A DNA stretch of 64,000 nt. Source: Bugula neritina. Taxonomy: Eukaryota; Animalia; Bryozoa. Below are positions 1 through 38,400 of this stretch, one piece after another; the stretch's first letter is position 1, and the number at the start of each line of letters is the position of its first letter. The notes under the pieces were generated by a model. It did no database searches, was not told the DNA's origin, and worked only from the letters and a program-made list of their open reading frames with translations. The stretch is taken from positions 17,452,633-17,516,632 of the forward strand of contig OZ037769.1 in assembly GCA_964035545.1 (NCBI GenBank), in the 5' to 3' direction. Both the position numbers and the translations under genes were made by a program.

Positions 1-84
1 AGATATGATAACTCCTCATGTCTATGTATACTCTGTAGTGCAGATATGATAACTCCATATGTCTATGTATACTCTGTAGCGTAG

Positions 85-3000
85 ATATGATGCCACTAAC
101 TCTAATATCAGCTGCTGCGGAAGGACTTTTGTACATTGACCTTAGTCCCAAATTCACATTGAATCTAACACTGCAGGTAATTCTAGTAACTAGATGCAAC
201 TGCTTACAGCGTGCTTATAGTGTGCTTATAGTGTGCTTACAGCGTGCTTATAGTGTGCTTACAGCGTGCTTATAGTGTGCTTACAGTGTGCTTATAGTGT
301 GCTTACAGTGTGCTTATAGTGTGCTTACAGCGTGCTTATAGTGTGCTTACAACTAGCAGGTGCTCAACCATTATAAACCTACAAGTTGCGGTAAGCTATG
401 AATCCTCATGCCCAGTTTACAACAGATATCAACTATATTACATAACTTCCTAACATTAAAGTTTGATAGAAAATATTAGTCAACCAATCATTTCTACACT
501 TTTAGGTACTTTTTGAGTAAATACAGTATTGAAACTATATCTTAAAATATATATTGTATCCTCTTTTACATACTAATACTGACTTTACACTTGAATGTAA
601 TTCTTTCAAGAACATACGATGCATAATAACATAAAGTGGGCAACTCCAACATCTCTTTATAGATTGTGGGTCACACTGTCTATTTATATCTCAATGGAAA
701 TTACCAACAAAAGTTTCAGCCAGAATTTTTCACTGGAAACAGCACGATACACTCTGTTGGCGTAGGATCGCGTGCCTTCAGGGGTTCCATACAGGACATA
801 CAGGTGTTGAACACAACAGCTTCGACCAGGTAAAACTCACCTCAACTTTTACAGTATGTTAGAAACAGTTATGTGTCATGCTCAACAAAGAAGAATTTTC
901 TTGTGGTTTCAATTTCATTTCTTACTACTAAAGTCTTATTTTTCAACTTAAACAACTTCTTGTAACTTGCGTCTGTTCAAAACATGCAGAACACCAAAAC
1001 GCAGTTAGGTCAATTCCGCTACAAGAACTGAATTAGAGTTTCATTCTGCAATTTTAGTCTCCGACTTCTATTTCCTGGTCACATTAAACACTCGGGCAAT
1101 GTGATGCTAGGAGTGTGGGACTTGTGTAAATCACTTCCTGTATGTTTTGATGGCCTGATTTGGCATCAGATTTTAAAATTAACATAAAATATTTCTACAA
1201 ATTTATATCAATAAGCAATTGTTCTCTTATAGTGAGATCTACGCGATGCAGAAAGGGTTGACACCAGTTCAGCACGTCGTCAGACCCGAGTGTGAATGTC
1301 CGAGGTATTACTTTGACTCATTCAATCTGCTAAACAAAGGGGCTGCGGGTGGCCCAGTTCTCAGTAGCACATGTGGAGATGACTCCCATAGCTCTACCGC
1401 AGGCAGGTTCGTCGAGTCAGATTCTAGTAACGGAAAGTACTCGGTGTTCACAGCAGACGGCTGGATGTCTCCCCTGGTGAACGAGTCAGAAATTACCATA
1501 AGACTACAGCAGTCTGTAACGGTGTGTTTATAGTCTGTTTATAGTCTGTAATGATATGCCTACAGTCTATAACGGTGTATAGTCTGTTTATAGTTTGTTA
1601 CAGTTTGTAGTATGTTTGCAGTCTGTGAATTAGTGTGTGATTTGGTTTGTCTATTACTGAATTATTCTTGGAAGTTGGACATCTGAATTATGCACTAAAT
1701 GAATACATATTTATATAGTTTGGTATAATCACTTTTCTATATTACAAGCTATATAATTTCTGAAAAAAGTATTATTGTTGCAAGGAAAATATGCTGATTC
1801 TGGTGTATAACGTAAATACGAATTAAAGTTCATTTTATTTATGTTTACAAAAAGGTGTTTTTAGTATCTGGAGTCCTCGATGGCCCACAGCCTGTGAATC
1901 TAGAGGTAGAGGTGTATGAGAGTGAGACGAGGCGGGTGGCTATGTATGTTAGTGATGACTGCATGCAAGACTATGGTATAGAAACTTACGATGTACAAGA
2001 ACTACTTGATGTCACAAACAACCAGCAGCAAGGTGGCAGTCAACCTCTCTGTTTGGCTAAGGATGACATTTTTTCTAAGATGAGCAAGTATGAGCTAAAT
2101 CATCTATGTTGTAATATTTTCATAAAAAATGTATCACCACTGCATGAGTGAAAAATTGTCTTATAGCTGTTTTGATTGTTTTCCAATTCATTACTTAAAT
2201 TGATGTTTCAGACGTTTATAACTTTGTCTTTCAATTAATTCTTCAAAGTCCGAATTATAAGTAGTTTTTAAAGTTTGATTCCATAAAAAATGACACCTGC
2301 TTAAATTTGCAGGCATTGGATGGTTCCGATTGTAATGAAATACAGATACTCGCATGACGACGTCGCTGGGGGGCTAAATGGAAACAGACTCATCATAAGA
2401 CTGAAAGGGCATTGCGGGACAACTTCTGGAAGTCACCAGAATTGGTACAAACTAAGTCAACTGAGAGTATTTGGGAGGTAAGTGATCTTGTGAATTGACT
2501 TTAAATGCAAGCTAGTAATTTTGCTTACAGCATACTCCTGTTGTCATGGCAACATAACTGTGGTGAGATAGATGTGGAGTTATGTTCTCTCTGTAGGCCA
2601 GACTGCAGGGGGCAGAACTACACCATCATACCGGAGCCGTTTGCCATCGCAGAATACTATGACCTCTCCTCTAACATGAGGATATACACATGCCGCTGTA
2701 CACCTGGGGTTAGTGGAGATCACTGTGAGGGCTGTGAAGAGGTCGATGGTTTGTATAGGTACCACACAGGAAGTGGCTGTAGAGACTGCGGTTGCTCAGA
2801 CCTGGTGTCCAGTAAGCAGTGTAACAAAACAACTGGACAATGTCCATGTACAGATGGAGGAAGCAACACTCGAGCTGGGAGACAGTGTGTGAGTATTCAG
2901 AGTGGTGATGTCATTCTTTGGATCTTGAGAAAGTTATTAAATTGCTAATTCTTTTTGTAAACTAAATGAAAGTTACAAAACAAATAAATGATTGCAAATG

Positions 3001-6000
3001 AATACAGAATGTAGTAAATGTGTGTGAATACTGCACGTAGCACTGGTATATAGAGAAGGTAAAGCCTCTGTATGGGCCTGTAGCTGGAGGCACATCTGTT
3101 ACGCTACACGGAGGGTACTTTGATAAAGGACAGCCGACGGTTGAACTGGCAGGAATTCAACAAAACTTAACTGTACAGTAAGAGTCTCAAACCTATTCTA
3201 TAGTAAGCTTGTGAAATCAGAATAGTAATACAGTGTGTGAAATATATTCTAAAGATTTTGGGATACAGCATTGATAGCCGAGTACTATAATGAACCAAAT
3301 GTTATGTTTCATTTTACTCATCTAGTCTAATAGGGAATCTCAAGTGGCAAGGACATTTTATCAGATACATATTCATAATGACCTTAAGAAGTATCTCTTG
3401 AATATATCAAATACTGTTGAATGCATGCAGTGGTTTGCAGTACGATGTCTGAGATTGCCTTTACCACAATGCCATATGAGAATGAGAACGGCACAGAGAC
3501 AGAACTAGTTGTTTCTCTGACCAACACTTCTATCGACATCGGACCACCCGCCAAGCACTTCCCCTTCGAGTTCAGACCAAACAACATAATTCATGACATA
3601 TTTCCTCGCAAGTCTATTTTGAGGTGAGTGTGAACCATGAGGCCTCGCAAGGTGTATTCTGCTTTTCTCAAGTCGTAATGCAATAGCCAACATATTATAC
3701 AATGCTGTTGTTAACTGAGCTGAATTTTCTAGCGGAGGATCTACTCTAACTATTGCGGGGGAGAACATGGACTCCGTAGCCTTCCCTAAAATCCTCATAT
3801 ACATCAGACAGGAGAAGGCAACTCTCGGTGTTGTGGAGAGGGTTTGTTTTTTCTAATGCTCAAACCCATTTATTAGAAGACTTATTTTTCATTCTAATTT
3901 ATAAAAAAACTTCATTGCTAGTTATAACTGGGTTAAAACAATTCGCATACTTACATCAACAGAGGATAAGAAGAGAGAGTTATAAAATTTGTTTAATTTC
4001 TGTAAAACAGACAATGATAGTTTCCAATTCGACTTAATAATTGCCAAGTTTAAATCTTAACATAACATCTTGCTGTGTGATTTCAGAACTGTGAGCTCAT
4101 AAATGAGACAGTAATAGAGTGCGTAACTCCATCAACAAGCGAAGAAGCGCTGCCACATCTGGTCGGGATTGCACGCTTTGGTAAGTGACCACTGTTCTCA
4201 AATAATTTGATGGAGGGTTTGAAGAATTGCAAAACTGAGTCGTTGAAGAAGAGATTTCAGCGGCAATGGTAGCCATTTATCAGCTATGCATCACGAAAGC
4301 AGTGCTTACAATTGCCGGATACTATCCACAATATTGGCCAAAACTTGCTAAATATTTCATAATTATTATGACTATCAAATTAGAGAACTGTATACGCAAC
4401 ATTTATTGTGTTTTCTGTTGACATATCAAACAGTCTAGAACTGGCTGATCTCATCTGTCAATTTCTAAAAGATTTTGTGCCAACAACCAAGCCTTCTTCT
4501 ACATCCAGCACAGTTGCACCTTTTCTTGTTACCACCACACCCAGCACTACAACCACAGCACCCACCACTACTACCACTACACCCACCACTACTACCACTA
4601 CACCCAGCACTACTACCACTACACCCAGCACTACTACCACAGCACCCACCACTACAACCACAGCACCGAGCACTACTACCACTACACCCATCACTACAAC
4701 CACCACACGCACCACTACAACCACAGCACCCACCACTACAATCACCACACCCAGCACTACTACCATTACACCCACCACCACACCTACCACTACAACCACC
4801 ACACCTACCACTACAACCACCACACCTACCACTATAACCACTACACCCACTACCACACCTACCACTACAACCACCACACCTACCACTACAACCACCACAC
4901 CCACCACTACAACCACCACACCCACCACTAAAACCACCACATCCATCACTACAACCACCACACCTACCACTACAACCACCACACCTACCACTACAACCAC
5001 CACACCCACTACTATACCTTCCTCTGTAACCACCACACCCACTACTATACCTTCCTCTGTAACCACCACACCCACTACTATACCTTCCTCTGTAACCAGC
5101 ACACTCACTACTACACCTTCCTCTGTAACCAGCACACCCACTACTATACCTTCCTCTGTAACCAGCACACCCACTACTATACCTTCCTCTGTAACCACCA
5201 CACCCACTACTACACCTTCCTCTGTAACCACCACACCCACTACTACACCTTCCTCTGTAACCACCACACCCACTACTATACCTTCCTCTGTAACCACCAC
5301 ACCCACTACTACACCTTCCTCTGTAACCACCACACCCACTACTATACCTTCCTCTGTAACCACCACACCCACTACTATACCTTCCTCTGTAACCAGCACA
5401 CCCACTACTACACCTTCTCCTGTAACCACCACACCCACTACTATACCTTCCTCTGTAACCAGCACACCCACTACTATACCTTCCTCTGTAACCAGCACAC
5501 CCACTACTACACCTTCCTCTGTAACCACCACACCCACTACTACACCTTCCTCTGTAACCACCACACCCACTACTATACCTTCCTCTGTAACCAGCACACC
5601 CACTACTATACCTTCCTCTGTAACCACCACACCCACTACTATACCTTCCTCTATAACCACCACACTCACTACTACACCTTCCTCTGTAACCACCACACCC
5701 ACTACTATACCTTCCTCTGTAACCAGCACACCCACTACTACACCTTCCTCTGTAACCAGCACACCCACTACTATACCTTCCTCTGTAACCAGCACACCCA
5801 CTACTATACCTTCCTCTGTAACCAGCACACCCACTACTATACCTTCCTCTGTAACCAGCACACCCACTACTATACCTTCCTCTGTAACCAGCACACCCAC
5901 TACTATACCTTCCTCTGTAACCAGCACACCCACTACTATACCTTCCTCTGTAACCAGCACACTCACTACTATACCTTCCTCTGTAACCAGCACACCCACT

Positions 6001-9000
6001 ACTATACCTTCCTCTGTAACCAGCACACTCACTACTATACCTTCCTCTGTAACCAGCACACCCACTACTACACCTTCCTCTGTAACCAGCACAAGTTTTC
6101 CGAAGCAGAGTGAGCCTCCAATTTCTCAAAGTCTGTTTGTAAGTGGATCACCGGGTAAGCAATTCTTTGGTTTCTCTGATGTCTCCAAAAACTATGAAGC
6201 TGTTCTACCCAAATGCATTTTAGTCTCAGAACAAGCTCAGACATTCTATTGGGGAAATCTTAAATATTTTGTTGATGGATTGAGCGTTGCCCTGGTGAGT
6301 TTTCCACAATGTTAGCAGCAGCACTACACCACGCAGCCTTGACCCACACAACTAACCACTTAGCAGCTACTAACATATCTACGTATATTTTCGGTATTTC
6401 CAATACCAACTCAACACTAGTTGAAAATTTTTATAAAGTACACATTCCAAATGCTATGCTTATTTAGGGGCACTGAATGGCATCAATGGAATAAAGTTTA
6501 CTCTGGGTCTGAAGTTGGATGGCATTTTAGTTTACCAGGATATGGCTAATAGTCATGATTCATTTATAAGAAGTTTATCCGAAATACTGATTTACACAGA
6601 CCCTAAAATATCAAAGTTCAAAGATGAAGTCTTGGTGGGTCATTTTGTTACTTGCAAATGAGTTGCACCAACTAGGTGCAGCTTCTTATAAAATATAAAG
6701 CATGAGGACCTAATGCAGTAGCCCATGTGTGTCTATTTACAAGTCTTATCACAGAATCAGCTGATAGTATGCTGCTGAGTACATAGTGCTTCAGTTTACT
6801 TCACCACTTTCCTACACACACACCTGCTGTGAAATGTCACAGGTCTACAAGTACCCAGAGAGTATAGAGTTTGAGGGAGAGCTCCTCACCACATCTGGCT
6901 TGAAGGAAGCTGACTACAAAGTCATATTAGGAAAAGACACAGAGTGCGAGACAACTTTGCTCACCACCAACAGTCTCACCTGCAAACCGCCTCCTCAGCA
7001 GCCTGAGCCAGATCCAGGGGTCACTAAAATACATAATCAGAAAACGGTGCCTCATGTAGAGGTAACTCCTATTGTCTCGTGTCTCAGGGTAGTTTTGATG
7101 GAATTTTGGCAAGCATTGTTACTGTGAGGGTACAGGTGTACATGTACCCTGTGCTTTGATTTCATGCAAAGTGTTACCTGTGTGCTGACTTTACATTACC
7201 TCAATCTGCAGTGTAACAATGCAAAGTTTTTTCAAACCAACTGAATCATGTATAAGATCTATTTCTCGACCAAGATGTGTGACATCTACCACAATTAACA
7301 TGATTACCCAGGTGAGAATTGGCAGAGGTAGCCTCTCGTACAAAGTTGGCTATATACACTACTGGACAAACCTCTGGGAGGAGAGCATTTCCCTCCGCAT
7401 ATGTGTCATGGCGGGTGTCCCGCTGGTCATCCTGGCAGCTGTTGCGACAGCCTTTGTCTGCTACAGGAGGAGGAGACATTTGAAAGCAAGAAATGCAAAG
7501 TGGAGTTACGGTGACTACTCAGTCGCAGGTAAGAGTATCGGGTATGTTGAGAGTACTGAATCAGGTTAGAAGGAATGTCAACTCAGTGAATAGTGATACG
7601 ATTACTCAGTAAATAATTGATTCCCGTAAACTTAAACCCTGAAAGAGTCTTTTTTGTAGTGTCTATAGAAGTTGAAGGTTATGTGTCTTATAGTTTTATC
7701 TAAAAACTTTAATTTTTTTGGCTATATTCTGCTATGTTGTTGTTATATGTCTGCAAATGGTGATATATTGTCATTATAATATCTATTTGCCCAAAGTTCA
7801 ACTCAAGACAGTACCAGACAACCAGTTGCGACCTGACCTCGCAATCAAAGTCACACAGCATAGAATTTCTAAGGAAGACATCAGTGTAGGAGATCAGTGT
7901 TTAGGAAAAGGCTACTTTGGAATTGTTTATAAAGGACAATTGAAAACACAGAATGGAAGTTTAAAAACTGTGGCAATCAAAGGATTCAAAGGTAAATCCT
8001 ATAAAAGTCCAGAAAGAAGAATAATTTTTATGTTTTTTTAATATTAATGAGAATTCTGAAAAGAATTTGAAATGTTATGCAAAAAGCTGTTTAAATGCGC
8101 GGTGGCCATTTGAATACCAGAGTTATATAACCATCTCCAACGTTCAGCTGACCTACTGAGAGGTTGAGATAACTTTTCCTTGTATGATTAAAGCAAGTGT
8201 TGTTATGACACGTCTATAGCCAATGATATGATCACCTCTTCCACAGATACTGTAGAGGTGACGTCTGAAGATATCGAGAAGTTTCTTGAAGAAGGGATGT
8301 TTATGATCAACTTTAGACACCCTAACGTGCTCTCTCTGATTGGTGTAGTGTTTGAGAGAAAGGACCGCCCACTTGTCATATTACCTTTCATGGAAAATGG
8401 AAACCTGCACTCCCTGATAAGCAGGGAAAGAATGGTAAAGAATTGTCTTTCCTCAGTCTTATACAACTTGACTCATTGATATAAAACTAGAAAGTATGCA
8501 GTTTAGCAAATTTCTACTTAGTATAGTATAAATGCATGCATCAGAAACCGTTTATTCAGAAGTAAATATGGCTTGAATAATGTTATTGGGAAAAAAATTA
8601 CGTGTTTGGATGTTTTAGACATTGAAATCTAAGCTCTCATTGGCTGACTTGATACACTGTGCTCATCAAATAGCCAACGGGATGGCATATCTAGAAAAGA
8701 AGAATTGTATTCACAGAGACCTTGCAGCTAGGAACTGCCTGTTAGTATATTCAACCTTGACCTGTGTTGCTATAGTTACATAGTTATACAAAGAATAGCA
8801 GGAGTAATAAGTGGACCTGGTTTTGTAGAGTAGACGGAGCACACGTAGTGAAGATATCAGACTTTGGAATGTCTGTGTACATCGAAGACGGAAACTCGTA
8901 CAAGATGTCAGACATGAGTCACCCTCTGCCTGTGAGGTGGACAGCAATAGAGGCAATGACTGAGGGAATATTCAGTTTCAAGTCAGATGTGGTAAGATAG

Positions 9001-10234
9001 TGTTATACCTACCAGATGTTTGCCTATTCACTACATCACACTTACTGTTACCATGGTTACAGTGTATAGCTCTTCACTACATCACACTTACTGTTACCAT
9101 GGTTACAGTGTATAGCTCTTCACTACATCACACTTACTGTTACCATGGTAACATTTGCTACATTTCAGTGGTCATACGGAGTAACACTGTGGGAGTTATT
9201 TACCCTTGGCCTCATCCCTTACAGCGGAATGAGAGACAAAGCTATTACATCACTTCTCTTATCTGGCAGACGATTGGACAAACCCACTTCCTGTCCGCAA
9301 ATAATGTGAGTCCCAAACTAAAAACTCTCGCTGTGCTCTGAACATGTTACTATATGCTATCTTAACTCTCATAGTTGCTCTGCCACTAATTTGCAAGTTA
9401 ATTAGGAGTTACTGTCTCCTGTAAGAGCAATCTCTGTGTGACATTCTCACTTCTCCAAATGTTATGACCAGAGAAGGCTCCATGCAGAATTTACTTCTTA
9501 TAACAATCAATACCGAACTACTCTAACGAGAGAAATAGTATGGCTTCACTATAAATTATTTTATAGAAATCATATTTTTTACCAAATAATAATACAGTAT
9601 ATTATAATGTAAAATAAGGTATCTGTTATACAATAGCTTATTTCTGCGTGCCAACAGAGTTGCTTAAATTAGAGCTCACTGTTGACCTTCACCTTTACTC
9701 TGTACTCTGATACTTGTTAGATTCCTATAGTAACTCTTTAGTCGACTACACTGAGGGAAAGATAACTCTCTGCTAACACATGAGCCCATGCTCTATAGAC
9801 TCCAGACTACTAACTCCTGTATTCAGAGTTGTCCTCTACTGAACCTTTGCAGATTTGGGCTAATGCTTAGCTGCTGGAAGGAGAACCCAGCCGACAGACC
9901 GACATTCACTGGTATTTCCGCCTTCTTTGACAGACACCAGAGGGAGGAGCTTGTTTCTGCCGTCAAATCAGAGAGAGTTCACTTCTACTCAAGACAGGCT
10001 ACTCGCAGCATTCCCGAAGACTATGTAAGGTCATCTGGTTACGTCACTGATGTGTATCTAGATGATGAGAAAAAAGAAATAGTTGACACGGAAAATGGGT
10101 ACTTCATACCCCTAGCGAGAGACGCTATAGCGAGTGATGACGTGTGTGGCGCTGTAGTAGCAGCTCCTGAGACTAGGCATTGTACATTATCTAGTTATTG
10201 CTACTTCGAAAGAAACGAGTTGCTATTTTTGTAG
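85..10234 (+). CDS. Receptor tyrosine kinase, MET/RON-like, with LamG-like/LamNT/laminin-EGF + 3 IPT + mucin ectodomain (5'-partial, 20 exons, ~1,740 aa)
   Basis: Phase-consistent GT-AG exons: 85-176, 663-829, 1233-1521, 1855-2087, 2313-2477, 2597-2888, 3041-3177, 3441-3623, 3733-3841, 4087-4180, 4472-6154, 6468-6634, 6843-7061, 7312-7528, 7797-7991, 8247-8434, 8619-8740, 8829-8991, 9169-9305, 9853-10234. IPT motifs [72 protein letters not shown] followed by RRRR. Kinase motifs [57 protein letters not shown]....ADRPTF. Confidence 0.9.
201..350. repeat. 11-bp minisatellite (gtgcttatagt) in RTK intron
   Basis: Tandem gtgctta(t/c)ag(t/c) units. Confidence 0.9.
663..2888 (+). CDS. RTK exons encoding LamG-like end, laminin N-terminal (LamNT)-like domain and laminin-type EGF repeats (usherin-like)
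   Basis: Spliced translation ..[128 protein letters not shown]. The Cys spacing is laminin-EGF; motif order resembles the usherin N-terminus (from memory). Confidence 0.7.
4472..6154 (+). CDS. Mucin-like Thr/Pro/Ser exon of the RTK (coding tandem repeats: ~21-bp TTTTTTP units, then 33-bp [12 protein letters not shown] units)
   Basis: Open frame (ORF 4408-6315); acceptor ctaaaag|ATTTT at 4471/2 and donor CCGG|gtaagc at 6154/5; both phase 1; 1683 nt = 561 codons. Confidence 0.8.
7797..10234 (+). CDS. Tyrosine kinase domain and C-terminal tail exons of the RTK
   Basis: All catalytic motifs are present across six exons (GxGxFG, VAIK, alphaC Glu, [18 protein letters not shown]); stop TAG at 10232-10234. 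Confidence 0.92.
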
Positions 10235-21691: not shown

Positions 21692-24600
21692 GTATATATA
21701 TATATACTTAGAGAAATGAGATTATTAGCTTGTTATTATGATGTGAAACTTGTGGGTGTATAAATCCAAATTGTCAAATAAAAACTAACTGCTAAACTAT
21801 AATCTCATTTATTCATTTCAAATTTCTGTAATTTTTCAGATTTTCTTATACTTTATTATAGAGAGATAAGTATAAACCCGATTCCTAACTACACACTGTA
21901 TTACTACGCCTCACTCTCAGCTACACTGTATTACTACGCCTCACTCTCAGCTACACTGTATTACTACGCCTCACTCTCAGCTACACTGTATTACTACGCC
22001 TAACAGTAACGATCTAGTGTTGTAAATATACGTTGTGTTGGAAGGTTTGCTGCTGCATACATTTGTTATATTATTTGTAACATATTCACATTGCTAGAAA
22101 GACAACTAAAATATGGTGAGTAGAGTGAAGGGAATAATTTGGAGAAACTAAAAGGATGTTTATGATTTTATTGCTGCAAACAAATACCATGATGGTGCAT
22201 GTCTGTGGTACAATATTATTACTACTTTAGCTGCATAAGTCAAAAATAAATAAATCATTTCATTAAAAACATAGTTAAAAGCGATAAAGTAATAAAATAT
22301 ATATTCCCATAACCTAGTCTCATGTAACCATGTATTTCTATATATATAATAATAAACTATATATCATGTGAAAAATTGTACATAAAATAAGAATTTAAAA
22401 TGTAGGCTACTCATTATATTACTGTAAAAAGCAGAACGCAGGTCAAATAGTCTGAGAGAGAGTCTAGTAGCACTATTCTATAGTAGCACTATTTTAGTAG
22501 CACTATTCTAGGAGATGACAGTTTTGTTGGGTTTTCTATTTATCTATCAGCTAGAACAAGAAATTAAACTACAGTCACTACAAACATTGTCTGTTATCAC
22601 AGCAACACACAAACCCCACCATTGTCATTCATACAGTATACTATATATTACATATACTTCATATAAACTTCTTAATCCATTGCTTTATGTATCTGACATT
22701 AATTTCCAAGCAGAAACACTGCAAACCCTGCAACAGCAGATACACCTGCAACAACAACACCAGCAGCAGCAACAAAAGGTGCTGCCACAAATCCACCAAC
22801 AGCTGCAGCGAGAGCTCCAACAACCAAACCTATGGCAACGCCGCCTCGTAAATTAGCACGTTTTTTCATTTCAGTTTCAAGTTTCTTTAGCTCTTTCTCG
22901 TGAGCAGCTTTATCCTTCTTCAACTCTGCCATATATTTCTTTCTATCATTTGCAACAGATTCAATTTTTTTACGCATGCCTTCCTGGTGCTTTTTTAGTA
23001 TCTTCATATCAGAGGCGTGATCTTTTTCTTTCTTCCTTAGACTTTCTTTTGCGTAATCTAATCTTCTGTCTGCTCTCTTTTCAACTCTCCAATTTTTAGC
23101 CTCTGCACGTTGTTTTTCGAGGTCATCAACAACCTTCCGATTATTTGTGACAGTTTCCTGAAAGAAGCTTTCACACTTCTCAATCAAAGCTGTCACATCT
23201 TCTAGTTGCTGGACAAGCAAACTTTCAAGTTTGCCTTCTTTTGCTGCCTTCAACTCAGCTTCCATACTTCTAAGTTTCTCTCTTGTAAAATAGCTCATTG
23301 CAATCAACCGAGCATCAATGATGTTTTCTTCCAGTTCAGATTGGTATTTCCTAAAATACAGATATATAGGTAGTTAATTGTCTCGACATTTAAAAGTAAG
23401 AAAGAATTAGAAATTTAAATGACGTAATAAAAATGAGATGAGAAAAATTACTTAACCTAAAACTTGGCGATTCTAAGACTCTGTGATATTTAGCCTCACG
23501 CTGAAATCTCTTTCTGAAGGTCTCAGCTGTCTCCTCTAAGGCAGACTTCAGTTCCTCACTTTCTGAATACTTTTTCAGTTCACTAGACTCCACATGCTAA
23601 ATAGAAACAGGAGTCTTATATAATCAACAGTTTTGAGTTAAACAAGAACAATTCATATTTTCTGTCATCAAGCAGTGTTGAGTAATTACCAAGTTGTTGT
23701 GTTAAACCTGATCCCATTAAGTAAACTGAGAGTAGTTTTATTCAGTATAAGTAACTTTTTTTGTCTCCATGTGACCATGACTAAGCCTCAGAGTCAGATA
23801 GTATTATACGCTAGTATCACTCTATAAGCACTCTAAACATGTGATGTAACAAATCTCTCGATTTAAGTAAACTGGCATACTATAAGCTAAACAATCAGGT
23901 AAACAAGACTTACTTTGAACATCTCTACTTGACATATCTTTGAAACCTCGGTATAGATTTTACGACATGTAATATCTTCTAAATAGTCTTTAGGAATCAC
24001 CAGGGGAGGTAAATCTTCGTCTTCATACCTTTTTCTGATTGCCTGATAATATTATAACGCATTTATACCTGCATGTACTACATAGATAATATACATATAG
24101 CAAATATATAATATACATATACTAAATATATAATATACATATACTAAACATATAATATACATATACTAAATATATAATATACATATACTAAATATATAAT
24201 ATACATATACTAAATATATAATATACATATACTAAATATATAATATACATATACTAAACATATAATATACATATACTAAACATATAATATACATATACTA
24301 AATATATAATATACATATACTAAACATATAATATACATATACTAAATATATAATATACATATACTAAATATATAATATACATATACTAAACATATAATAT
24401 ACATATACTAAATATATAATATACATATACTAAATATATAATATACATATACTAAATATATAATATACATATACTAAATATATAATATACATATAGCAAA
24501 TATATAATATACATATACTAAACATATAATATACATATACTAAATATATAATATACATATACTAAATATATAATATACATACACTAAATATATAATATAC

Positions 24601-26495: not shown

Positions 26496-29400
26496 ATAAT
26501 ATAGTAAAACAGAAATTGGTGAAGAATTGGAAGTCAATTTGTGATTTGGGAAACTGGACATTTTCTATTCCATGCTATCTAATAATTATAATGCTAATTT
26601 GTTTGAGTAATTGACACACAAAGCTCAGGCACTATTCTCTCGCACTTGTATTTTATTGCAGATGTATCAAAGAAAAGTTTCCAAAAAAGTGAAAATACTT
26701 GAATTCCTTATGACGTTGTGTTATGCTGCAGTAAAAAAATTGACAAATTTTCAGAAAAAAATTATTCCTGCTTTTATTCGAAAGCAATAACAGACTGCAG
26801 CTCAAACTCAGATTGCACTGCAGATACTCTAGAAGAAACTTTAATTAACAAAAAGTTTAAAACAATTATGTTTCAAACCTGTAAGATTCCAGTCAAAGGT
26901 GTCCGCCTTATCTGTATCAACAGCGTCGCCAGGGTGTGGCAAGTTAAACGTAGTGATTGAATTGAAGGATCTCTTTATACCATTCATGAGCTCCACTATG
27001 TCAGGGTTTTTTGGGTTGCTTTGCTGAAAAAAAATTTGCATTTTGCTGTAATTGATCTTTTAAAAAACATTGTAATTCAGACATTTTTATTGTACAGTCA
27101 AATAAATTACCAATTTATAAAAGATTCTGTCATCTTCTCCAACCACATCATCGTAGTTGTAGTTTCTTGTGACGAAAATCAAAGACCTAAACAAGCTATC
27201 TTCCTTATCTTCATCACCATCCAGGTCTTCATCTAGAGCAACCTCTTTACCATCAGTAGATTCTTCAGCCTCTGAACAAAACTACAAGACAATTACATAG
27301 TTATTACTGCATCAGTGTATTATATGAGTATATATGTATTATATATTATTAGTATATAATTATGTATTATATTAGTATATTTATATGTATTATATTAGTA
27401 TATACATGTATTATATTAGTATATATGTATTATATTAGTATATATGTATTATATGAGTATGTTTGTTTGTTTGTTTGTTTATTTTATCAATATATAAATA
27501 AAGTAAAAAGAACACAAGAAGGCTAGTGAAAGCGCAGGGCTTAAAATAATTAACAATTAGTCAGTTAATTAAGTTAAGACGGTTAAGTAAGTCAGTAAAG
27601 TAAGTCAATTAAGTTAAGTCATAGCTCTCCGGCAAGAAGGCAAAACCTCACACCCGCCCTGAATGCACCGGGATTAGACTCATTTTTAAGCTCAGGTTTT
27701 AACCTGTTCCATAGCGCTGACACCCGATAACATGTACTTCTTTGACCTGCAGCAGTAGAGAAAAAAGGAATGGGAAGATTTGATATTGAGAAGCGTGTAC
27801 TGTAGGAGTGAACAATTAAACTTTTTTTAGTGTTTGAGTAAAATTTATGGGCTTTTTGCAAAATTTTCAGCTTATATAAATTTTCTATTTGAAGAATGTT
27901 AGCTTTTTTAAAGAGAGGGGCTGTGTGATGCAAAAAATCTTTTTTAAAAATATACCGTAAATTTTTTTTTTGTAATGGTAAAATTTTGTTGAGCGCAGTT
28001 TGTGAGGCATTACCCCATGAGTCCAGACAGTAACTTAATTTTGAATTAATTAGTGAGTTATATAAAATTATTAAAATCTCAGCAGATAACAATTTCGAAC
28101 ATGGATATAGTAGACCAGATAACGGTCGTATTTGTAGTATTGAGTTATTTATATTGTAGTGAGTAGTGCAAAGTACAAATACGGGAATCGCCCTCTCCCT
28201 ACTCTTGGAATACTTAGCCCCTTATGTAGCAACCAATTAGCAGCTCCGGAAGATATGCTTCCGATTCACGTGACACTTCCCGGGTTATTAACATTTTATC
28301 ACGTTGTTGTAAGCGGAGGCTTGAAGGAGAAACATGTATTAGTAGTGGACTGATGTTTAGGATAATTTGATGTGATGTTTATTTTATGCTTTATTGTGGA
28401 TAATAAATATAATTACTCGACAGCTACCCTAGTAATTACTAGCAGGATAGCTAACTAACTATACGCAAGTAGATAACTCACGCACAGTAATTGCACGAAT
28501 TACTACAGTGGTGGCAGCAGTGGGATCTTGCGTATAGCAGTCATGGCAGAAGACGGCACGGAGCTACCCATTCCACTGAATGAAGGTGAGAGAGATAATG
28601 TTGATATACCTGTGGAACCAGTGGTGTTAGATGAAGAAGTGAGAATTCCTAGAGAGCATGGTGAAGACAGATACCGGCTGAAGGCGCCCACCTTCACAGG
28701 CGAAGAAGCAGTGGAGCAGTTTATCCAAGAATTCCAAGATGTGATGGAGATTGCACAATGGCCACCAAGGGTGGCGTTGCTCAAGCTCAGGATGGCGCTG
28801 ACGGACAAAGCTAAGCCGTACGGAGCGGGACCTGACATAGACGGAATCTTTGCTTCTCTGCGGGCCCGTTTTGGCATCTCCCCCATAGATGCGCGGGCCC
28901 GTCTACAAAGGATGCGGCGTGATCCTCACACGTCGCTACAAGAGCACGCTGCCACGGTGTACCCACTAGCGCAGATCGCGTTCCGCGATCTGCCTCCAGT
29001 ACACCGTGAGAGGTATACTTATGATGCCTTCATGCAGTCCATCAACGACTTGGGGCTCCACCATCAATTCCAAGCGAGGGGAGTCACCACGGTCGAAGAT
29101 GCACTTGCGGTGGGAGAAGCCTACCTCATGGCGACTCACATGCACCGCAACCGCGTGGCCTCCCGCCAGGTGACCACGGAGCACACTACTGCTCATGCTG
29201 AACCAAACGCGGAACCCTCCGCGGTGGCTAATGTGAACCAGATGTCACTAGCGTCAAAAGTCGCACAGATGACTGACATGCTAGATAAACTGGTCGCCAC
29301 ATTAGCTCCCCCAAGCCAGGTAGATACTGCCCGTGAGCCTTGCGGGCCGCAGGTACATTCACCAGGCATGGGGCACAACTTCTGCTGGGGATGCGGAAGG

Positions 29401-32400
29401 CCAGGACATTTCCAGAGGAACTGCCCTCAACTCCCACAAGGGTTAAACTACCACGGCCCGCAGATGTTCCCACCTCCTGCGGGCCGTCTGTAAATCACCC
29501 AGGGAGGCCCGCGCGTCTGTCGCCCTACTGGGCGCCGCGCGGAGATGCTGTGAAGTGGCGACCCCCGCGGCAAGTAGGCTCAAGCCACTCGCTGCCTGGG
29601 TCCTCTACGCCACTCCAACACCAACACGGAGCCGGCAGACGGTTGACCTCAGAGCCTGCGAGGGAAACGGTACAGGCGCCACAAGGCGTACCGCCCCAAC
29701 CTCGGCAGCTGGTCAATAGTCGTCGCCAACCGTGGACCCCTCGACCCACAGCGAGGGAGGTGCAACCACGGCACACACAGCTGCAGCCACACGGAAGTAG
29801 CTACTTCCTGCCAGGAAAGCTAGCCGGCAAGCCTGCCAACTTCCTCCTGGACTCAGGCTGCACCACCAACCTCCTTAGCCGTCAATTCTTTGACACCCTC
29901 AGCGCTAAGGTCAAGGACGGGTTGGCACCGTATGAGGGGGATCATGGCACCCTGGCAGACGGGTCGTGCATCCCCTTCTACGGCATTATTGAGCTAACTG
30001 GTTACGTCCGTAACCAGGCCATCCAAGAGACGTTTATCGTCGGGCAGCTCAACGAGGACGCTATCCTCGGGATGCCATTCTTACAACGACACGGATGTCG
30101 CATCGATTTCAGTAAATCTGCGATGATCATGGGCGACAAGGAGCTCGCTTGTGTCGATAAGTTTGGTCGTCCTCTAGCGGGAGCAGTGCAGGTGGTACGG
30201 AGCTGTACTATACCAGGCCACTCCCGGGCTACCGTCCGCTGCAAGGTAGACGGTGGCCAAACCTCTAAGTTGGGAGTTGTCGAAAGTACGCACTCGAGAG
30301 TCCAACTTGCCCATAGCTTTAGCCGGCTTACGGGACAAGGAGAGAACTCAGTGCAGTGTGTCAACCCCTCTTCAGAGACAGTAGACCTACCACCCAGATC
30401 TATGCTGGGCCGCTTCCATCCTGTCCAGGAGGAAGCCATTGGGCCGTCGTCGGGAGCTACGACGGAAGGTCCTCAGCAGAGCCCGTCTCAAGGGCGGAGG
30501 ACCGTCCCAACCCACGCCTCCCATCCTCCAGGGACGCGTGGCTGCACAGGCAACAGAAAGCGCCAGGCTATGGCTAGGTTGCCACATGGGTACAGTGAGG
30601 CGTTCCGCCACACGGACCACGACGCCCGCCTAAATAGAGCAGGCTGTCGTGAGGTACCACGGGCGGCGAAGACCGCCCCTGCTCAGCCACTCCAACAGAG
30701 GGCTGACACGCCCCCGGAGGCTGCCCAGAGCCTCCGCGCCAAACCTGTATGGGCTGGTAACGTTAGGGAGCTGCCAAAGCTCCAGGAAAGCCTTCCTGGG
30801 GTGGTAGCCGACGTGTACCGAGCGAAACAGGAAGGGCGACGACCCAGTAGTAAACGGCGACAGGGATGCGCCGAGTTACGGCTGTACTGTCAACGTTGGA
30901 GCTCTCTGCGGGTCGGGCCAGATGGTCTGCTGACCATGACCTTGGCCGCCAACAGCAGACAGCCAGCCAGGAAGAGGGCCGTCTGCCCAGTTGCCATCCG
31001 CCGGAAGTTGATACAAGACACCCACGAGGAGACTCACGGAGGAGTCCAAGGGGTGGTCACCAAGCTACAACTCCGGTGGTACTGGCCCAACATGGAGCGG
31101 GATATCTGGCACAGAGTGAGACGGTGCAAAGTTTGCCAGACCAACAAGCATAGCCGTCTCCCTGGTGAAGCGGGGCGGCAGACGCATTGTGCGAGAAGGT
31201 CTCGGCAAGCGGAGACTGTCATCCTGGCCGGAAACACCTCCATGACACATCAGGAAGACTTGGCGAGGCGAGAAAGGCCACTTCCATCCTTGAAAGTGCG
31301 CCCACCGCCCCCAACGTCAAGCCTGCCATCACCACCACTTCCGGAACCAGAAACGGGTCCGGAAGTGCAAAAACCCCCCGTGGGAGGGGCTCCGCAAGGA
31401 GATACCAACGTAGGAACAAACGTCACAAACAGGCTGGAAAAACCACCCGTGAGACATAACAGTCCACAGGTGAGCACACCGCCTCCCACAGTGACGACGC
31501 CTCCAGGACCACACACTAGGCAACTTCCAGCGTGTCTCAGAGACTGTGTACGTGACCGCGGTATAAGCGGCAGTAACGAAAGTCTAGAGAAGCCTCGCAT
31601 GGGAAAACAGGCAAAGAGCCGTGGGAGTTGTGAACACCACGGAAATCTCAACTTTTGCCTCGGCGGAATCTCACACCAGATTCATCCGCTGGAAGTGAAA
31701 AGCCCTAGTCACGTTTCACAACCACGCTGTCCGGTCTTTTCCTACGTTGATGCAGTGAAGAGTAGACGTGCCACTAAACAGTAATCATTTACCGCTCTCA
31801 TTCCAAAATGTCTTACTATTCTGGATCGAAGGGTGAGTTAATTATGTTTTTGGTACGATAACTAGACTGCATCAGTCAGCTTTAGCTACACTAGCTAGCG
31901 AGCTGGAGATTCGATAATGATAAACAGTGATGGGAATACACGTCGACTTTGATTTTAAATAATCTGCCATAGCGAGTGTGTTCTCCATCAACTATTCATT
32001 AGCCTGAATCTCACGAGTGTAACTGAACAGAGTACCGGTCAGGCTGTACACGCCGACGGTACCTCAGTGTATAATCTTTAACACTGCTACTCTTTCAGAT
32101 CACACTCGAGTGACCACCTCCCGGTCACGGGACCAGCCAACCTCTCTGCCTATGGAAGAGGAACCTGTAATGGAGAATGGCATACCCGTGGCGCTCCGTC
32201 GACGACACCGCTGGGTGTCACCCACGACAGAAAGGAGAATTGAGGAAGCCTGGGGACCCAGTGGACCCCACCGAACCTGCCAGGTCTGCTTCGAGGAGTG
32301 CCCGTCACACCGCTCCCTGCGTCTACATGTAGACGCCCATTTTCTACTCCACTTCTGCCCGTGCGGGTTCCACGACGTCTACCCGTATCCCGTGACAGTC

Positions 32401-35400
32401 CATAAGCTGAGCTGCTTCGCCGGAGAGAACCATACTGTCGATGAGGACAGTTTCCCCCAATACCTGGATACCATCAAGCCAGTCATCAGGAAGGCTATCA
32501 CCCTGGCCGCACTAGCGTCAGGGTTCCACGTACTGCTGCTATCCGCCCGCCACAAGTCCCCTATGGTTCAGGGCCCGTCCCCTACCCCCGTCAACCCTAG
32601 CAACACCCCCAAAGTAGAAAGAACAACAATACCATCTCTAACAGAGACTACTACAACCCCGCCAAGGCCTAGCCAGCTGGCTAATGTAGAAGAGCGGCTT
32701 GTAAGACTGCAAGCCGAGTTCACACAACTTGCCCCTGACTTGCTGGATACGACGACAGGTCTATACCAGTTGAAGGACTCAGTGGGGCGACTGAAGAGGC
32801 GGCTACGTGCCCGACAGGCTCGACATAGAGCACGCTCGCTACAAGAGTCAGAGTCCACCCAATGAGTATGCCTGGGGTAGGCACCTTTCGTTGAGCTGTA
32901 TTTTGTCTGGAAAGTGACAAGTGCTCCGACATTGGCCCGCGTGCTGGTAAGCACCCTCTCTCTTTATAGCTGACTAGATGTGTGTGATCGATCACCCTGT
33001 TAACTTCTGTATATAAATGTTGTCGTGCTCAACTATTTCTCTTCTTACTCTTTGTGGGTTTACTTATGTATGTTTTTCTTTTTGGATTATTGTATAGTTT
33101 TTCATTATGTGTTTTTTTATTGTGTTATCAGAAAGTAGGGCTTTCTGCTGGGGGGGGCGGTGTAGTGAGTAGTGCAAAGTACAAATACGGGAATCGCCCT
33201 CTCCCTACTCTTGGAATACTTAGCCCCTTATGTAGCAACCAATTAGCAGCTCCGGAAGATATGCTTCCGATTCACGTGACACTTCCCGGGTTATTAACAT
33301 TTTATCACGTTGTTGTAAGCGGAGGCTTGAAGGAGAAACATGTATTAGTAGTGGACTGATGTTTAGGATAATTTGATGTGATGTTTATTTTATGCTTTAT
33401 TGTGGATAATAAATATAATTACTCGACAGCTACCCTAGTAATTACTAGCAGGATAACTAACTAACTATACGCAAGTAGATAACTCACGCACAGTAATTGC
33501 ACGAATTACTACAATATGATCATTCCAGTTCAAATGTGGGTCAATGTATATCTCAAAGAATTTGATGGTATCTGCTTGAGTAATGAAAATGTTATTCAGT
33601 AAGATTTTATTAGTTTGTAAGGAAATTTTATTCTGAGGGTTTTTAGCACAATGTATTTTGTTTTTGATATATTTATGATGTATATGTATTATATATGAGT
33701 ATATATTATACTCATATAACTCACGCAAGTTTATAGTCACTATCCCTGTGAGAAGCCCCTGATCGAAAGGGTTTTTATTAGAACAGGCTAAGTACTTATT
33801 CAGATGAGGCACGGGAGCAATTATGACTGAATGCTCTTCCTAACATCACCAATAGCCTTTGTCGGGTTTGAACCCACAACTTTGTGTTCACTAAGCGAAC
33901 CCTCTAACCCCTGGCTGATCCCCATATTATACTCATATAATGATATAATATTATATTCACTTTGGGATATTTTATACTGTGTAAGATATTCCAAAGTGAA
34001 TTTAATATATTAACAATGATTAATAAATTAGAAACTAACAAATATTTAATAATAATTGTGAGGGTAAAATAACTATCTCTAGCATTTTACACTCTGAATA
34101 TATTTTTATATTATAGATTTAGCTTTTTGAATAAAATTTCATCTTTGCTCCACAAATATCTCTGATATTCTTAGAAGCACACATTCTCCCATATAGATTA
34201 ATACCTGAAGCCTTGTAAGGTTTATCGGTTGAAGTAACTTGTCAATATTGAAAAGCTGTACAGATGCAATCTGCAGAGAAATGTAGGTTACCAGATGGTC
34301 AACTCTGACATCACCTTCGATATGACCTTCACCTTCACAATCCATTATCAGAATAGCCATCTGCAATGTTAGTAGTCACATTATGATATTTAACACTTGT
34401 GTACCACATGTTGCACCATTATGAACATTTGCCAACTCACTCACTAAAATTGTGACTCAAAGAACAGATGGAAAGAGCTGCATATTATCATTAATAGACC
34501 GATGTTGAGATGGTGTGAAGGTCAAAGTTTAATGACTAGGGGTCTGAGCAGAGAGGCAGGATAATTTGGAATATGTTCATATTTTTCACTCCCACCTGCT
34601 GTCAGTTTAGCTGCAATCAGTATCAGACATGGAAACAAGTCAACTTTTATTCTGTCCACTTTGACCCGGCCTTATCAAAAATGCCAGGCTGATCTGGGCT
34701 GAGCAGTTTAGACATTAGGTTAAAGTAACCAGCTGCCAAAAAAACTAAATGAAGAAGCAACACTTCATCATTTATTATTAGTAAAAATAATTTATGCTAT
34801 TGCTACCAGTATTCACATTAAGTAAATTCTCAACTGCCAGCAGAGTGAGTTGGTGCATTATTACAATATAATAAAAATGTACAATATAGCCAAAAGCTTG
34901 TGTGATAATTTGTGGGTTGTGATGAAAATAAAGCTAGAGAATATAATCTGTTGTATTGCAAAAGAGAGAAGGCAATTCCCAAGTGTAGCAATATATTTTA
35001 TTAGTCTGTTTACAAAAAATTATAAGTCTTGATCAATTGGTAGCCGTACAAGCAGTAGATTGATTGTACGCTGGCAAGCTCGCCCTTCGAATTACAGGAT
35101 ATAGCTTTTACCGTTATAGACAGGTGTTCTAAATGTACATATAGGCTATAGCCAAATTTCCTGACATGTCTAACTCACAAACACTACGTTTCCATGATTC
35201 ACATTCACGGGCTTTCCATGTACCGATCTCAGATCGATATCGCTGAGATCGATCTGAGAAATGTACTCAGATCGATCGTTTTTTCATGAGAGTGTCAGAT
35301 CGATCTCGCGTAGTTGCCTCCTCTTAAGTGAAGGATACTTTGAAAAGTATATTTTGTTTATCTATTTGAGTGATTAAAGCTACTACTGTTGAAAAAAAGA

Positions 35401-38400
35401 TGGTCGTAGTCTAAAATTTAATCCCAGCTATAAAATATACGCAGCAAAGCTTTCAGGGTACGGTAATTTGGCCAATTTAAAATAATTAATTTTAATTTTT
35501 TAGCTAGACAGCTTATATAAAATTAATGGCTGTCTTGCAGATTATTAATAAACTTACAGGACTGTTAGGCTTAAAATTACAAAGAAAATAGCTAATGAAA
35601 CTAAGTTTTAATAGTCATTTAAACTCAATCCAAACTCTCCCCTTTCCGATGGGGGGTGTGTGTGGTAAATTTATGTTGTGTGTGTGTGTCCTTTGTTGCC
35701 GAGATCGGCACTTCGGTCCTCCGAAACACCGATATGCCGATTCTCGGCATTTCGGATTCCCCAGGGGACCCAGCCCCTGAGGCAGCAGCACCACCAGCCC
35801 TCACTGTTGAGGCGCTGGTCACAGCCCTCCAAGGATTGCGGGGGCAAGGACAGGCATCACCTGGTGACAGGTATCGCCTCCAGCCCCCGACTTTCGGAGG
35901 AGATGGAGACGTGGAACAGTTCATCAAGGAGTTCGAGGACGTGGCCACCACCGCTGAATGGCCAGTACGGGTGCGCGTCCTCCAACTCCGGGCCTGTCTG
36001 ACAGGCCGAGCCAGGAACTTCGCACTGGGACCCGACGAAGCCCACATCATGCGGGCTCTTAGGGCCCGGTTCGGCCTGACCACGGAAGAGGCGTCAGACC
36101 AGCTACAAGTGATGAGGAGAGACCGAAGGACACCTCTGGAAGATCACGCTAACGAGGTAGAGCGCCTGGCTCAGGCTGCTTTCGGTCACGCCACTGGCGA
36201 AGATCGGAAGCGCCTCGTTTTTAACGCGTTCTTCCGGCGCGTGAACCACCCGGACCTCCAGCGGTACTGGCTGGCCGCGAAGGTCAAGAGCCTGGACGAG
36301 GCACTAGAGATGGGGAAGGCCTACTTCCAAGTAGAAGAACCACGGAGGGCGAACTACGCAGCTCGCCAGGTGGCCGGAGATACAGAAGAGGTACCCCCAA
36401 CCACACAAGTGGCAGCAGCAACTACTCCGTCGCCCGAGCAGACGCAGCTCAACATGCTGATGAGCATGATGAAAGGCCTGCAGGCTACGGTGACAGAGTT
36501 GCAGCGCAACCAGACGGACAGGCGGGCTCCCCGCTCGCGGGACGACCCTGTCCGCCTCCCTCTGCCCACCTGTTGGGAGTGCGGGATGCCAGGACATGTG
36601 AGAAGGCACTGCCCTAAGGGACAGAAGCCTTTAAACACCCGAGGCTCACGGTGAATTCCGCCACCCGTGGGCCCCACGCCAATCCGGTCCGGGATAGGAC
36701 TCGGAAGACAACAGAAGAGACCTCTCCAGAGTCGACCTACATCGAGTGGCAAGTAAACCAAAGATCTCGGAGACCGAAAGGCCTACCCGATCCTCCTGCC
36801 ATACCACTCGAAACCCGGATGGAACTAGAAGAAACCGGATGGCAGGCACCTCGGAGATCTCGGAGACCGCAAGGTCTACCCGATCCTCCAGCCTGGCCAC
36901 TCCGTAACCGGTTCGCGGGGTTGCCCGAGGAGGTTGTGGAGGAAGATTCAGCTTACTCGCAAGAGTACCCCAAGCTACCCTCCCGACCTCAGAAAACCCC
37001 CGTTGTCTCTAAGACGAAGAGGAAGCCCGCTATGCGGACCCAAGTTGTGTCTCCCCCAGAGACTGACCGCTCCAGGAGCACCCAGCCGTACGGAAGCAGC
37101 TACTTCCTGCCCGGGAAGATTTCGGGTAAAGCTGCCACATTCCTACTGGATACTGGGTGCACTACCAACCTGCTGAGTCGGCGTCTCTTTGACACTCTTG
37201 GGGCTCGAGAGCGGGCAAGCCTCGAGCCGTATGAAGGTGCGCATGGTACGTTGGCGGACGGATCATGCATTCCTTTCTACGGCGTCATCTCACTGCCTGG
37301 ACGCGTCCGTGATCAAGCAATTCACGAGACGTTCATAGTCAGCCAGCTGAAGGAGGACGCCATCTTGGGAATGCCCTTCCTGGAGAAACACCAGTGTCAC
37401 ATGGATTTCCAGAAGTCAGTGGTGGTGATGGCTGGGAAGGAACTTGTCTGTGTTGACAAGTTTGGCAGGCCCTTGGTGGGCGGAGTCCAGGTAGTGCGGG
37501 ACTGCACAGTTCCGGGGAGGTCCCAGGCGACTCTCTGATGCAGAGTCAACTGCAAGGGGATCGCCGGCCTGGGGATGGTTGAAGGAACGCACGGAGCCAT
37601 CCGACTAGCAAACAGCCTGAATCGGCTAGATTGTCGGCAAGAGCTCCTCGTGCAGTGCATCAACCCCTTCACGGAACCTGTCCGATTATCGGCCGGAGCG
37701 CTGGTGGGGAAGTACCACTCCATCCAGGAAGCGGATGTGGGTCCGGCACTGGAGACAGTGGCCGACACCCAGGGGAACCCCCCTCACACCAGACGAGGAG
37801 CAGTCCCGAAGCACCTGGCTGACCTGTATGGCGGAGCGTGCGGAGACTGTACGAGTACTACTGAACGCCAAGTACTGGCTCAACTACTTGCGGAGTACAG
37901 TGATGTCTTCAGTTGTGGCGATGGAGACATGGGGCTGACTAAGGTTATCTCCCACGAGATACCCCTGGCAGCCGGCACCACTCCCATCAGGCAGCCTACC
38001 CGACGTCTAGGCCCGGAGAAGGAGAAGAAGGTGAGCCGACAGGTACAGGATCTTCTGGACCGGGATCTGATTGAGCCTGCCCACGGTGCGTGGAGCTCCC
38101 CAGTGGTCCTGGTCAAGAAGAAGGATGGTAGCTGGAGATTCTGCGTGGACTACCGCAGACTCAACAACGTTACTATCCAGAACGCCTACCCTCTCCCACG
38201 GATAGATGAGTCTTTAGATGCCCTCGCGGGTAGCAAGTATTTCAGTACTTTGGATCTGCTTAGCGGGTACTGGCAAGTGCCCCTCAGTCCTGATGCCCAG
38301 GACAAAGCAGCATTCATTACTCGCGACGGGCTCTGGAAATGAAAAGTACTGCCATTCGGACTAACGTCCGCTCCGGCAACATTCCAACGACTCACGGAGC

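Follow-up and report, generated by a model that had tools for sequence, protein, structure and literature searches.

A predicted receptor tyrosine kinase of Bugula neritina with an usherin-like head on a MET-type body

Described receptors closest to the locus

The exchange of ectodomains on receptor tyrosine kinases (RTKs) of invertebrates is well known, Met-LP and the Venus kinase receptors being examples. In lefftyrin cadherins, an LN-EGF head is combined with a receptor-type tyrosine phosphatase. A predicted gene in which a LamG-like, LN-like and laminin-EGF (LE) head is followed by an IPT stalk, a transmembrane helix and a MET-type tyrosine kinase was identified on the forward strand of a 64,000-nucleotide stretch of Bugula neritina DNA (contig OZ037769.1, positions 17,452,633 to 17,516,632; G000:C5:17452633-17516632 of a 216-Mb genome), hereafter the window. 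The gene probably encodes a functional single-pass RTK of a small bryozoan family that would have arisen by intron-mediated exon shuffling, with the 5' exons of usherin joined to a copy of MET from its second IPT domain (IPT2) onwards. Lefftyrins and Venus kinase receptors provide a precedent for borrowed ectodomains on tyrosine-signalling receptors of non-model animals, although their heads, stalks and enzymes differ.

MET and RON, including the spiralian Met (PMC6374515), share with the predicted protein an IPT stalk, a transmembrane helix and a kinase that is closest to MET; an IPT2 intron and kinase exon ends are also held in common with the Sema-bearing MET (Sema-MET) of the same genome. 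Unlike MET and RON, the gene has no Sema, PSI or IPT1 domain, contains three IPT domains instead of four, and carries a LamG-LN-LE head, a mucin-like exon and a single tyrosine in the activation loop. Sema is the part of MET and RON to which HGF/MSP-type ligands bind. Met-LP of Lophotrochozoa and Echinodermata (PMC6374515) likewise combines an invertebrate MET-type kinase with a non-standard ectodomain acquired by domain shuffling, but that ectodomain is a complete plexin ectodomain with Sema. The Met/Met-LP survey was based on proteins that contain Sema, and laminin domains are not mentioned in it (PMC6374515).

Usherin resembles the head in the predicted order signal peptide, LamG-like, LN and LE, in spacing and in five intron phases, whereas it has ten LE modules (two are found here), an LG pair and an FN3 array in place of the IPT stalk and kinase. 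Netrins and laminins have an LN-like jelly roll followed by LE and provide the nearest structures in the ESM Atlas; they differ in being secreted or linked to glycosylphosphatidylinositol, with no LamG-like domain in front and no kinase. The initial annotation of this DNA knew of no named RTK family with such an architecture, and a literature search found no description of one; a review of wiring receptors (PMC10084454) and the Met/Met-LP survey (PMC6374515) contain no such protein. As judged from its predicted domains, the gene is a new ectodomain variant of MET-type receptors; it lacks Sema, PSI and the fourth IPT, and it is not an usherin.

The head-stalk junction and the putative donors

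The intron at 2889-3040, placed by the initial annotation at the switch between head and stalk, is in phase 0 as claimed. The same intron was found at the same position and codon in three paralogues (P1, P2 and P3), a more distant gene on contig C2, Watersipora subatra, metagenome contig L038 and locus L045, and is in phase 0 in all eight loci with a length of 152-1054 nt. Contig L038 contains LN, LE and IPT exons in order. The W. subatra RefSeq model XP_067931128.1 (P0003) runs across the junction, and the IPT exons continue downstream in a second RefSeq model. An assembly chimera is ruled out because a single contig of DNA run X1, which is probably from the source sample, covers 1423-4480 at flat depth.

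The division of the W. subatra locus into two RefSeq models, a split in the Bugula annotation and a gene model built from DNA alone could also be read as two adjacent genes mistaken for one, the first encoding a secreted LN-LE protein and the second a MET-like kinase without a head. These annotation splits fall elsewhere, however, and P0003 spans the junction. No stop codon follows the last LE module and no signal peptide precedes the IPT exons, and with an intron of conserved phase in eight loci this alternative is highly improbable.

A Sema-MET gene is retained at C4:9480400-9492200 (L024-L025, reverse strand) and contains a signal peptide, PSI (E 1.1e-5), four IPT domains, a transmembrane helix and a kinase. 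The 394-codon first exon is probably Sema and has no Pfam match. The IPT2 exon of Sema-MET has a phase-0 acceptor eight codons before a conserved proline, exactly like the exon starting at 3041 of the window, and the first IPT of the chimeric genes scores 67 against IPT2 and 43 against IPT1 of Sema-MET. Because phase and codon position match and IPT2 outscores IPT1, the head is concluded from exon structure to have replaced Sema-PSI-IPT1 at an intron still present in the donor, which agrees with the exon shuffling proposed at the outset.

The Gly-rich loop, VAIK lysine, helix-C glutamate, HRD and DFG motifs of the kinase are all intact, and a single transmembrane helix is predicted. In the PDB, kinase exon 8249-8431 matches MET best (E 1.5e-11), followed by MER, AXL and RON. 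For the C2 paralogue, MET occupies the top PDB matches except for one entry labelled EGFR with an equal score. Together with kinase exon ends that coincide with those of Sema-MET on C4, these matches support the MET-like kinase body described initially. MET has tandem tyrosines in its activation loop; P1-P4 and the C2 gene have the YY pair, whereas this copy has one tyrosine there, and its tail carries seven. A tree of seven kinases of this genome, with no outgroup and weak support, was uninformative on the MET clade, and its identities of 40-42% are slightly low owing to one 24-residue piece of Sema-MET that was read in the wrong frame. A cluster of six related tyrosine-kinase exon sets was also observed at C3:23587000-23687000 and C3:24330872.

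Human usherin has its LamG-like domain (LGL) at residues 146-283 and LN at 295-516 (PMC7317166), and the USH2A gene has introns after c.485, 651, 784, 848, 1143 and 1550 (supplement of PMC9399374). The distance from the end of LGL to the end of LN is 233 residues in human usherin and about 239 in P0003. The head introns of the bryozoan gene have phases 2, 0, 2, 0 and 2, identical to those of USH2A after c.485, 651, 848, 1143 and 1550 (all five compared across USH2A exons 2-8, paired by landmarks and lengths and not by alignment); the human c.784 intron has no counterpart in the family, and the c.1328 intron could not be confirmed. The corresponding segments measure 166, 197, 295 and 407 nt in human, 175, 164, 274 and about 437 nt in Watersipora, and 157 (or 97), 167, 289 and 398 nt here. 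Five matching phases would presumably arise by chance about 1 time in 400, on typical phase frequencies and with unmatched introns skipped. The retained usherin is probably a locus at C3:5920250-5959380 (reverse strand), where FN3 matches come after a match to Laminin_N.

Searches were made exon by exon or with P0003. The suggestion that head exons be tested against LamNT and LE profiles gave an LE match over the cut-off, whereas the LN-like exons had no Pfam match and Laminin_G_3 stayed below its cut-off (Table 1). The linker/LN exon of the C2 paralogue matched F5/8 type C (E 0.0028) and, less strongly, Laminin_N (E 0.059). Exon 1233-1521 returned 21 matches in a large protein search, one of which (P0019) was spurious. 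The ESM Atlas model of P0003 residues 357-619 is nearest to netrin/laminin LN+LE (TM-score 0.36-0.45), and that of residues 197-555 resembles Laminin_G_3 proteins (TM-score 0.32). An AlphaFold2 (AF2) model of P0003 with a partial alignment matched galactose-binding jelly rolls in VIA (best Z 5.1), with a netrin-4/laminin chain among the matches (Z 4.6); the confidence of this model was low (predicted local distance difference test, pLDDT, 46), and Foldseek returned nothing for it. No match was obtained in PDB sequence searches with the head exons, P0003 and an exon profile, word searches with two regions of P0003 and with the alignment returned P0003 alone, and scanning metagenomes with the LE alignment produced a single contig end, which was uninformative. 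The LamG-like and LN-like identities have indirect support, with no single line strong.

A real chimeric kinase could instead owe its head to an older LN-LE protein of independent origin, or to another protein with LamG and a galactose-binding fold (pentraxin/F5-8 or CASPR-like). Such a source would fit the Atlas feature matches to pentraxin-F5/8 and CASPR-like clusters (0.76-0.79), the better score of the C2 exon on F5/8 type C than on Laminin_N and the failure of the family profile to detect the probable usherin locus on C3. It is nevertheless unlikely, as usherin shares the predicted order, LamG-like, LN-like and then laminin-EGF directly, with spacing that matches (PMC7317166), the five intron phases agree with USH2A and netrin/laminin LN+LE structures come nearest to the region. 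An usherin origin is preferred, and the usherin-type head proposed initially fits usherin in domain order, spacing and intron phases but not by direct match, with weak structural support.

Related genes, selection and turnover

Close relatives of the exons are proteins of B. neritina and W. subatra. The full paralogues P1-P3 are located at C5:16.62-16.69 Mb and share the exon order of this gene through head and body, and a fourth (P4) is broken. The more distant gene at C2:14109387-14125600 (L030-L031, forward strand) has the same design and is more conserved, with a MET-like kinase and a YY loop. Its linker exon is followed by what is probably a GC-AG intron, and its second IPT contains an RRKR site. 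A kinase-less relative at C5:12421800-12435100 (L032:1834 to L033:5079, forward strand) contains a signal peptide, LamG-like, LN-like and LE segments, three IPT domains, a transmembrane helix and a basic RRR site in the IPT region. Its tail of 290 residues contains 25 tyrosines, of which 12 lie in I/L-Q-Y repeats, and no kinase motif was found in the 15 kb downstream. A further LN-like head exon pair is present near a contig start at C1:58872-62114 (L037, reverse strand). On the linker exon alone, the heads of the C2, C1 and kinase-less genes are borderline members of the family (9.9, 8.8 and 11.7 bits versus shuffled maxima of 11.6, 7.4 and 3.6, respectively); their place in it rests on exon structure as well. 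The fusion event is judged to be older than the Bugula-Watersipora split and not particular to this gene.

The ratio of nonsynonymous to synonymous substitution rates (dN/dS) against the Bugula orthologue, a pseudogene, is 0.35 in the exons of the head and 0.32 in those of the kinase. Among P1-P3 it is 0.26-0.43 for the head and 0.11-0.19 for the kinase. These values indicate purifying selection, and no sign of positive selection was seen in the comparisons. The dS at the locus against the published B. neritina assembly is 0.19-0.28, and the source is most likely a Bugula lineage distinct from that assembly.

Several observations weigh against a functional receptor of this origin. The syntenic gene in B. 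neritina GCA_010799875.2 and in two JGI contigs (L042:5024-16364, L043 and L044) is the pseudogene; a stop interrupts its first IPT exon, 3.9 kb equivalent to window positions 3097-7004 are deleted, and it also has a frameshift and a second stop. A head-only, frameshifted copy at C4:12790300-12796300, about 82% identical, is joined directly to sequence like that of the last intron. Because the syntenic gene, the C4 copy and P4 are broken, the subfamily appears dispensable or subject to fast turnover. No named relative was found outside Bryozoa, the large protein search giving only bryozoan-named or unnamed fragments, an outcome that shows few detectable relatives of a diverged exon and not an absence of the design in other phyla. 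Large protein search, word searches and the family profile gave no direct sequence match to usherin, both the LN and LamG segments are under Pfam cut-offs, and the AF2 models of P0003 are poor (pLDDT 32 alone, 46 with the partial alignment). The Watersipora locus was covered through the IPT exons, its kinase exons lying beyond the flank that was read. The gene model itself is known from DNA alone, and the ligand and signalling are inferred.

The family could be real and this copy recently silenced, with a frame that has not yet decayed. The pseudogene at the orthologous locus of the other Bugula lineage, the long branch of this copy, the loss of the activation-loop YY and of furin-type sites, the roughly 30 residues possibly missing from LamG, the expanded repeat and a model known from DNA would all fit such a history. 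It remains a rather improbable one given 1946 codons without stop or frameshift, splice sites that are all canonical and a dN/dS of about 0.3 even against a pseudogene. The copy is preferably regarded as functional; it is a divergent member of the family, with a long stalk loop, no furin-type site and one activation-loop tyrosine.

Gene model, stalk and predicted signalling

Exon boundaries were set by hand. The predicted gene consists of 22-23 exons, with every intron GT-AG and phases agreeing, and has a single open frame of 1946 codons without a stop, or 1385 if the mucin-like exon is omitted (exons joined locally). It is confirmed as a gene model and not as a transcript. The predicted domain order is signal peptide, LamG-like, LN-like, two laminin-EGF, three IPT, transmembrane helix and tyrosine kinase; PSI is absent, the laminin-EGF exon joining IPT directly. 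All segments named by the initial annotation are present in order on the forward strand, with GT-AG introns, matching phases and no internal stop. Two of its details were revised: the first exon begins at 80 and not at 85, as phase 2 is required, and the laminin-EGF repeats number exactly two. Its proposed upstream check located a signal peptide exon outside the window and no Sema domain. An insensitive search for Sema at the locus gave no match, the upstream exons encoding the signal peptide and a Cys-rich/LamG-like region. A homologue of the 528-nt upstream exon is present in every paralogue; the exon has no Pfam match.

Exon 331-390 is optional for the frame, which holds either way. If it is skipped, the junction matches paralogue P3 well, but the LamG-like domain is about 30 residues short. 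A single exon at 80-390 was rejected because it breaks the phase in each of the three related copies.

Table 1. Predicted features of the gene (window positions unless a locus is named).
Feature	Position	Strand	Remarks
5' start, predicted exon of 14 nt	L003:8635-8648, about 1265 nt upstream of the window	+	90% conserved in Bugula orthologue L042/L043; predicted
Second exon, 528 nt	L003:8911-9438, upstream of the window	+	Signal peptide, Cys-rich region, LamG-like start; predicted
End of intron after the two upstream exons	1-79	+	
LamG-like exon, phase 2-0	80-176	+	Conserved in L042 and the C4 copy
Possible small exon, 60 nt, phase 0-0	331-390	+	Uncertain; acceptor inside an 11-bp tandem repeat (201-351)
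LamG-like domain end, phase 0-2	663-829	+	Pfam Laminin_G_3 E 0.083, below cut-off
CxC linker and LN-like domain start, phase 2-0	1233-1521	+	
Remaining LN-like domain	1855-2087 (phase 0-2), 2313-2477 (phase 2-2)	+	
Two laminin-EGF modules, phase 2-0	2597-2888	+	Pfam PF00053 E 7e-6 on 2598-2888
Phase-0 intron joining head to stalk	2889-3040	+	Position conserved in 7 other loci
First IPT and initial part of second	3041-3177, 3441-3623, 3733-3841, 4087-4180	+	TIG E 2.6e-4 (3041-3172, over cut-off) and 0.072
Mucin-like exon, 1683 nt, phase 1-1, within second IPT	4472-6154	+	
Second IPT end and third IPT	6468-6634, 6843-7061	+	TIG E 0.038; conserved in paralogues
Third IPT end, transmembrane helix, basic stop-transfer	7312-7528	+	19-residue window, mean Kyte-Doolittle 2.47
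Tyrosine kinase and Tyr-bearing tail	7797-7991, 8247-8434, 8619-8740, 8829-8991, 9169-9305, 9853-10234 (including stop)	+	PF07714 on all six

The mucin-like exon, which the initial annotation did not mention, encodes 560 residues, including 280 Thr, 100 Ser and 91 Pro, with 21- and 33-nt repeats. Because P1, P3 and Watersipora have short phase 1-1 exons rich in S/T at the equivalent position (60, 84 and about 260-290 nt, respectively), it is probably a true, expanded exon, and a plain intronic repeat is disfavoured. The resulting loop on the stalk is probably O-glycosylated. Basic furin-type sites are present in Watersipora, P1, P3, the C2 gene, L038 and the kinase-less gene, and not in this copy.

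A G/A variant at position 1416 of the window, at about half depth in run X1, is synonymous in the model frame. Elsewhere in the window, a GC-rich, retrotransposon-like block with long open frames occupies 28477-42614, and two 224-codon open frames with near-identical starts at 22702-23373 and 59602-60273 (reverse strand) are probably copies of one mobile element.

In the proposed origin, a copy of the usherin 5' exons encoding the signal peptide, LamG-like, LN and LE segments would have been fused, within a phase-0 intron, to a copy of MET that contributed IPT2 onwards, in place of Sema-PSI-IPT1. By analogy with the LN-LE modules of netrins and laminins, the head may bind an extracellular protein, a matrix component or a cell-surface partner. 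Binding would cluster the receptors, and the clustered kinase, as in other RTKs, would trans-autophosphorylate, with tail tyrosines recruiting SH2 adaptors. Contact with matrix or a neighbouring cell could in this way be converted to MET-type motility and growth signals. The mucin loop might, speculatively, space the head from the membrane or set the threshold for clustering.

It is possible, though doubtful, that the usherin-head/IPT ectodomain marks a spiralian receptor family of great age and without a name, in which some members bear a kinase and others have Tyr repeats in its place. In colonial bryozoans such a family would turn over fast and would act in cell-contact or self/non-self recognition, signalling through a MET-type kinase.

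The known swapping of ectodomains on invertebrate RTKs limits the surprise of the finding. The MET lineage nonetheless gains an undescribed ectodomain; both likely donors persist in the genome, and the breakpoint can be read from an intron. The ligand of the usherin N-terminal head is poorly known, and a receptor joining this head to a kinase would allow ligands to be screened with phosphorylation as the read-out. The existence of a kinase-less member and of many broken copies suggests that this family of bryozoan surface receptors evolves fast.

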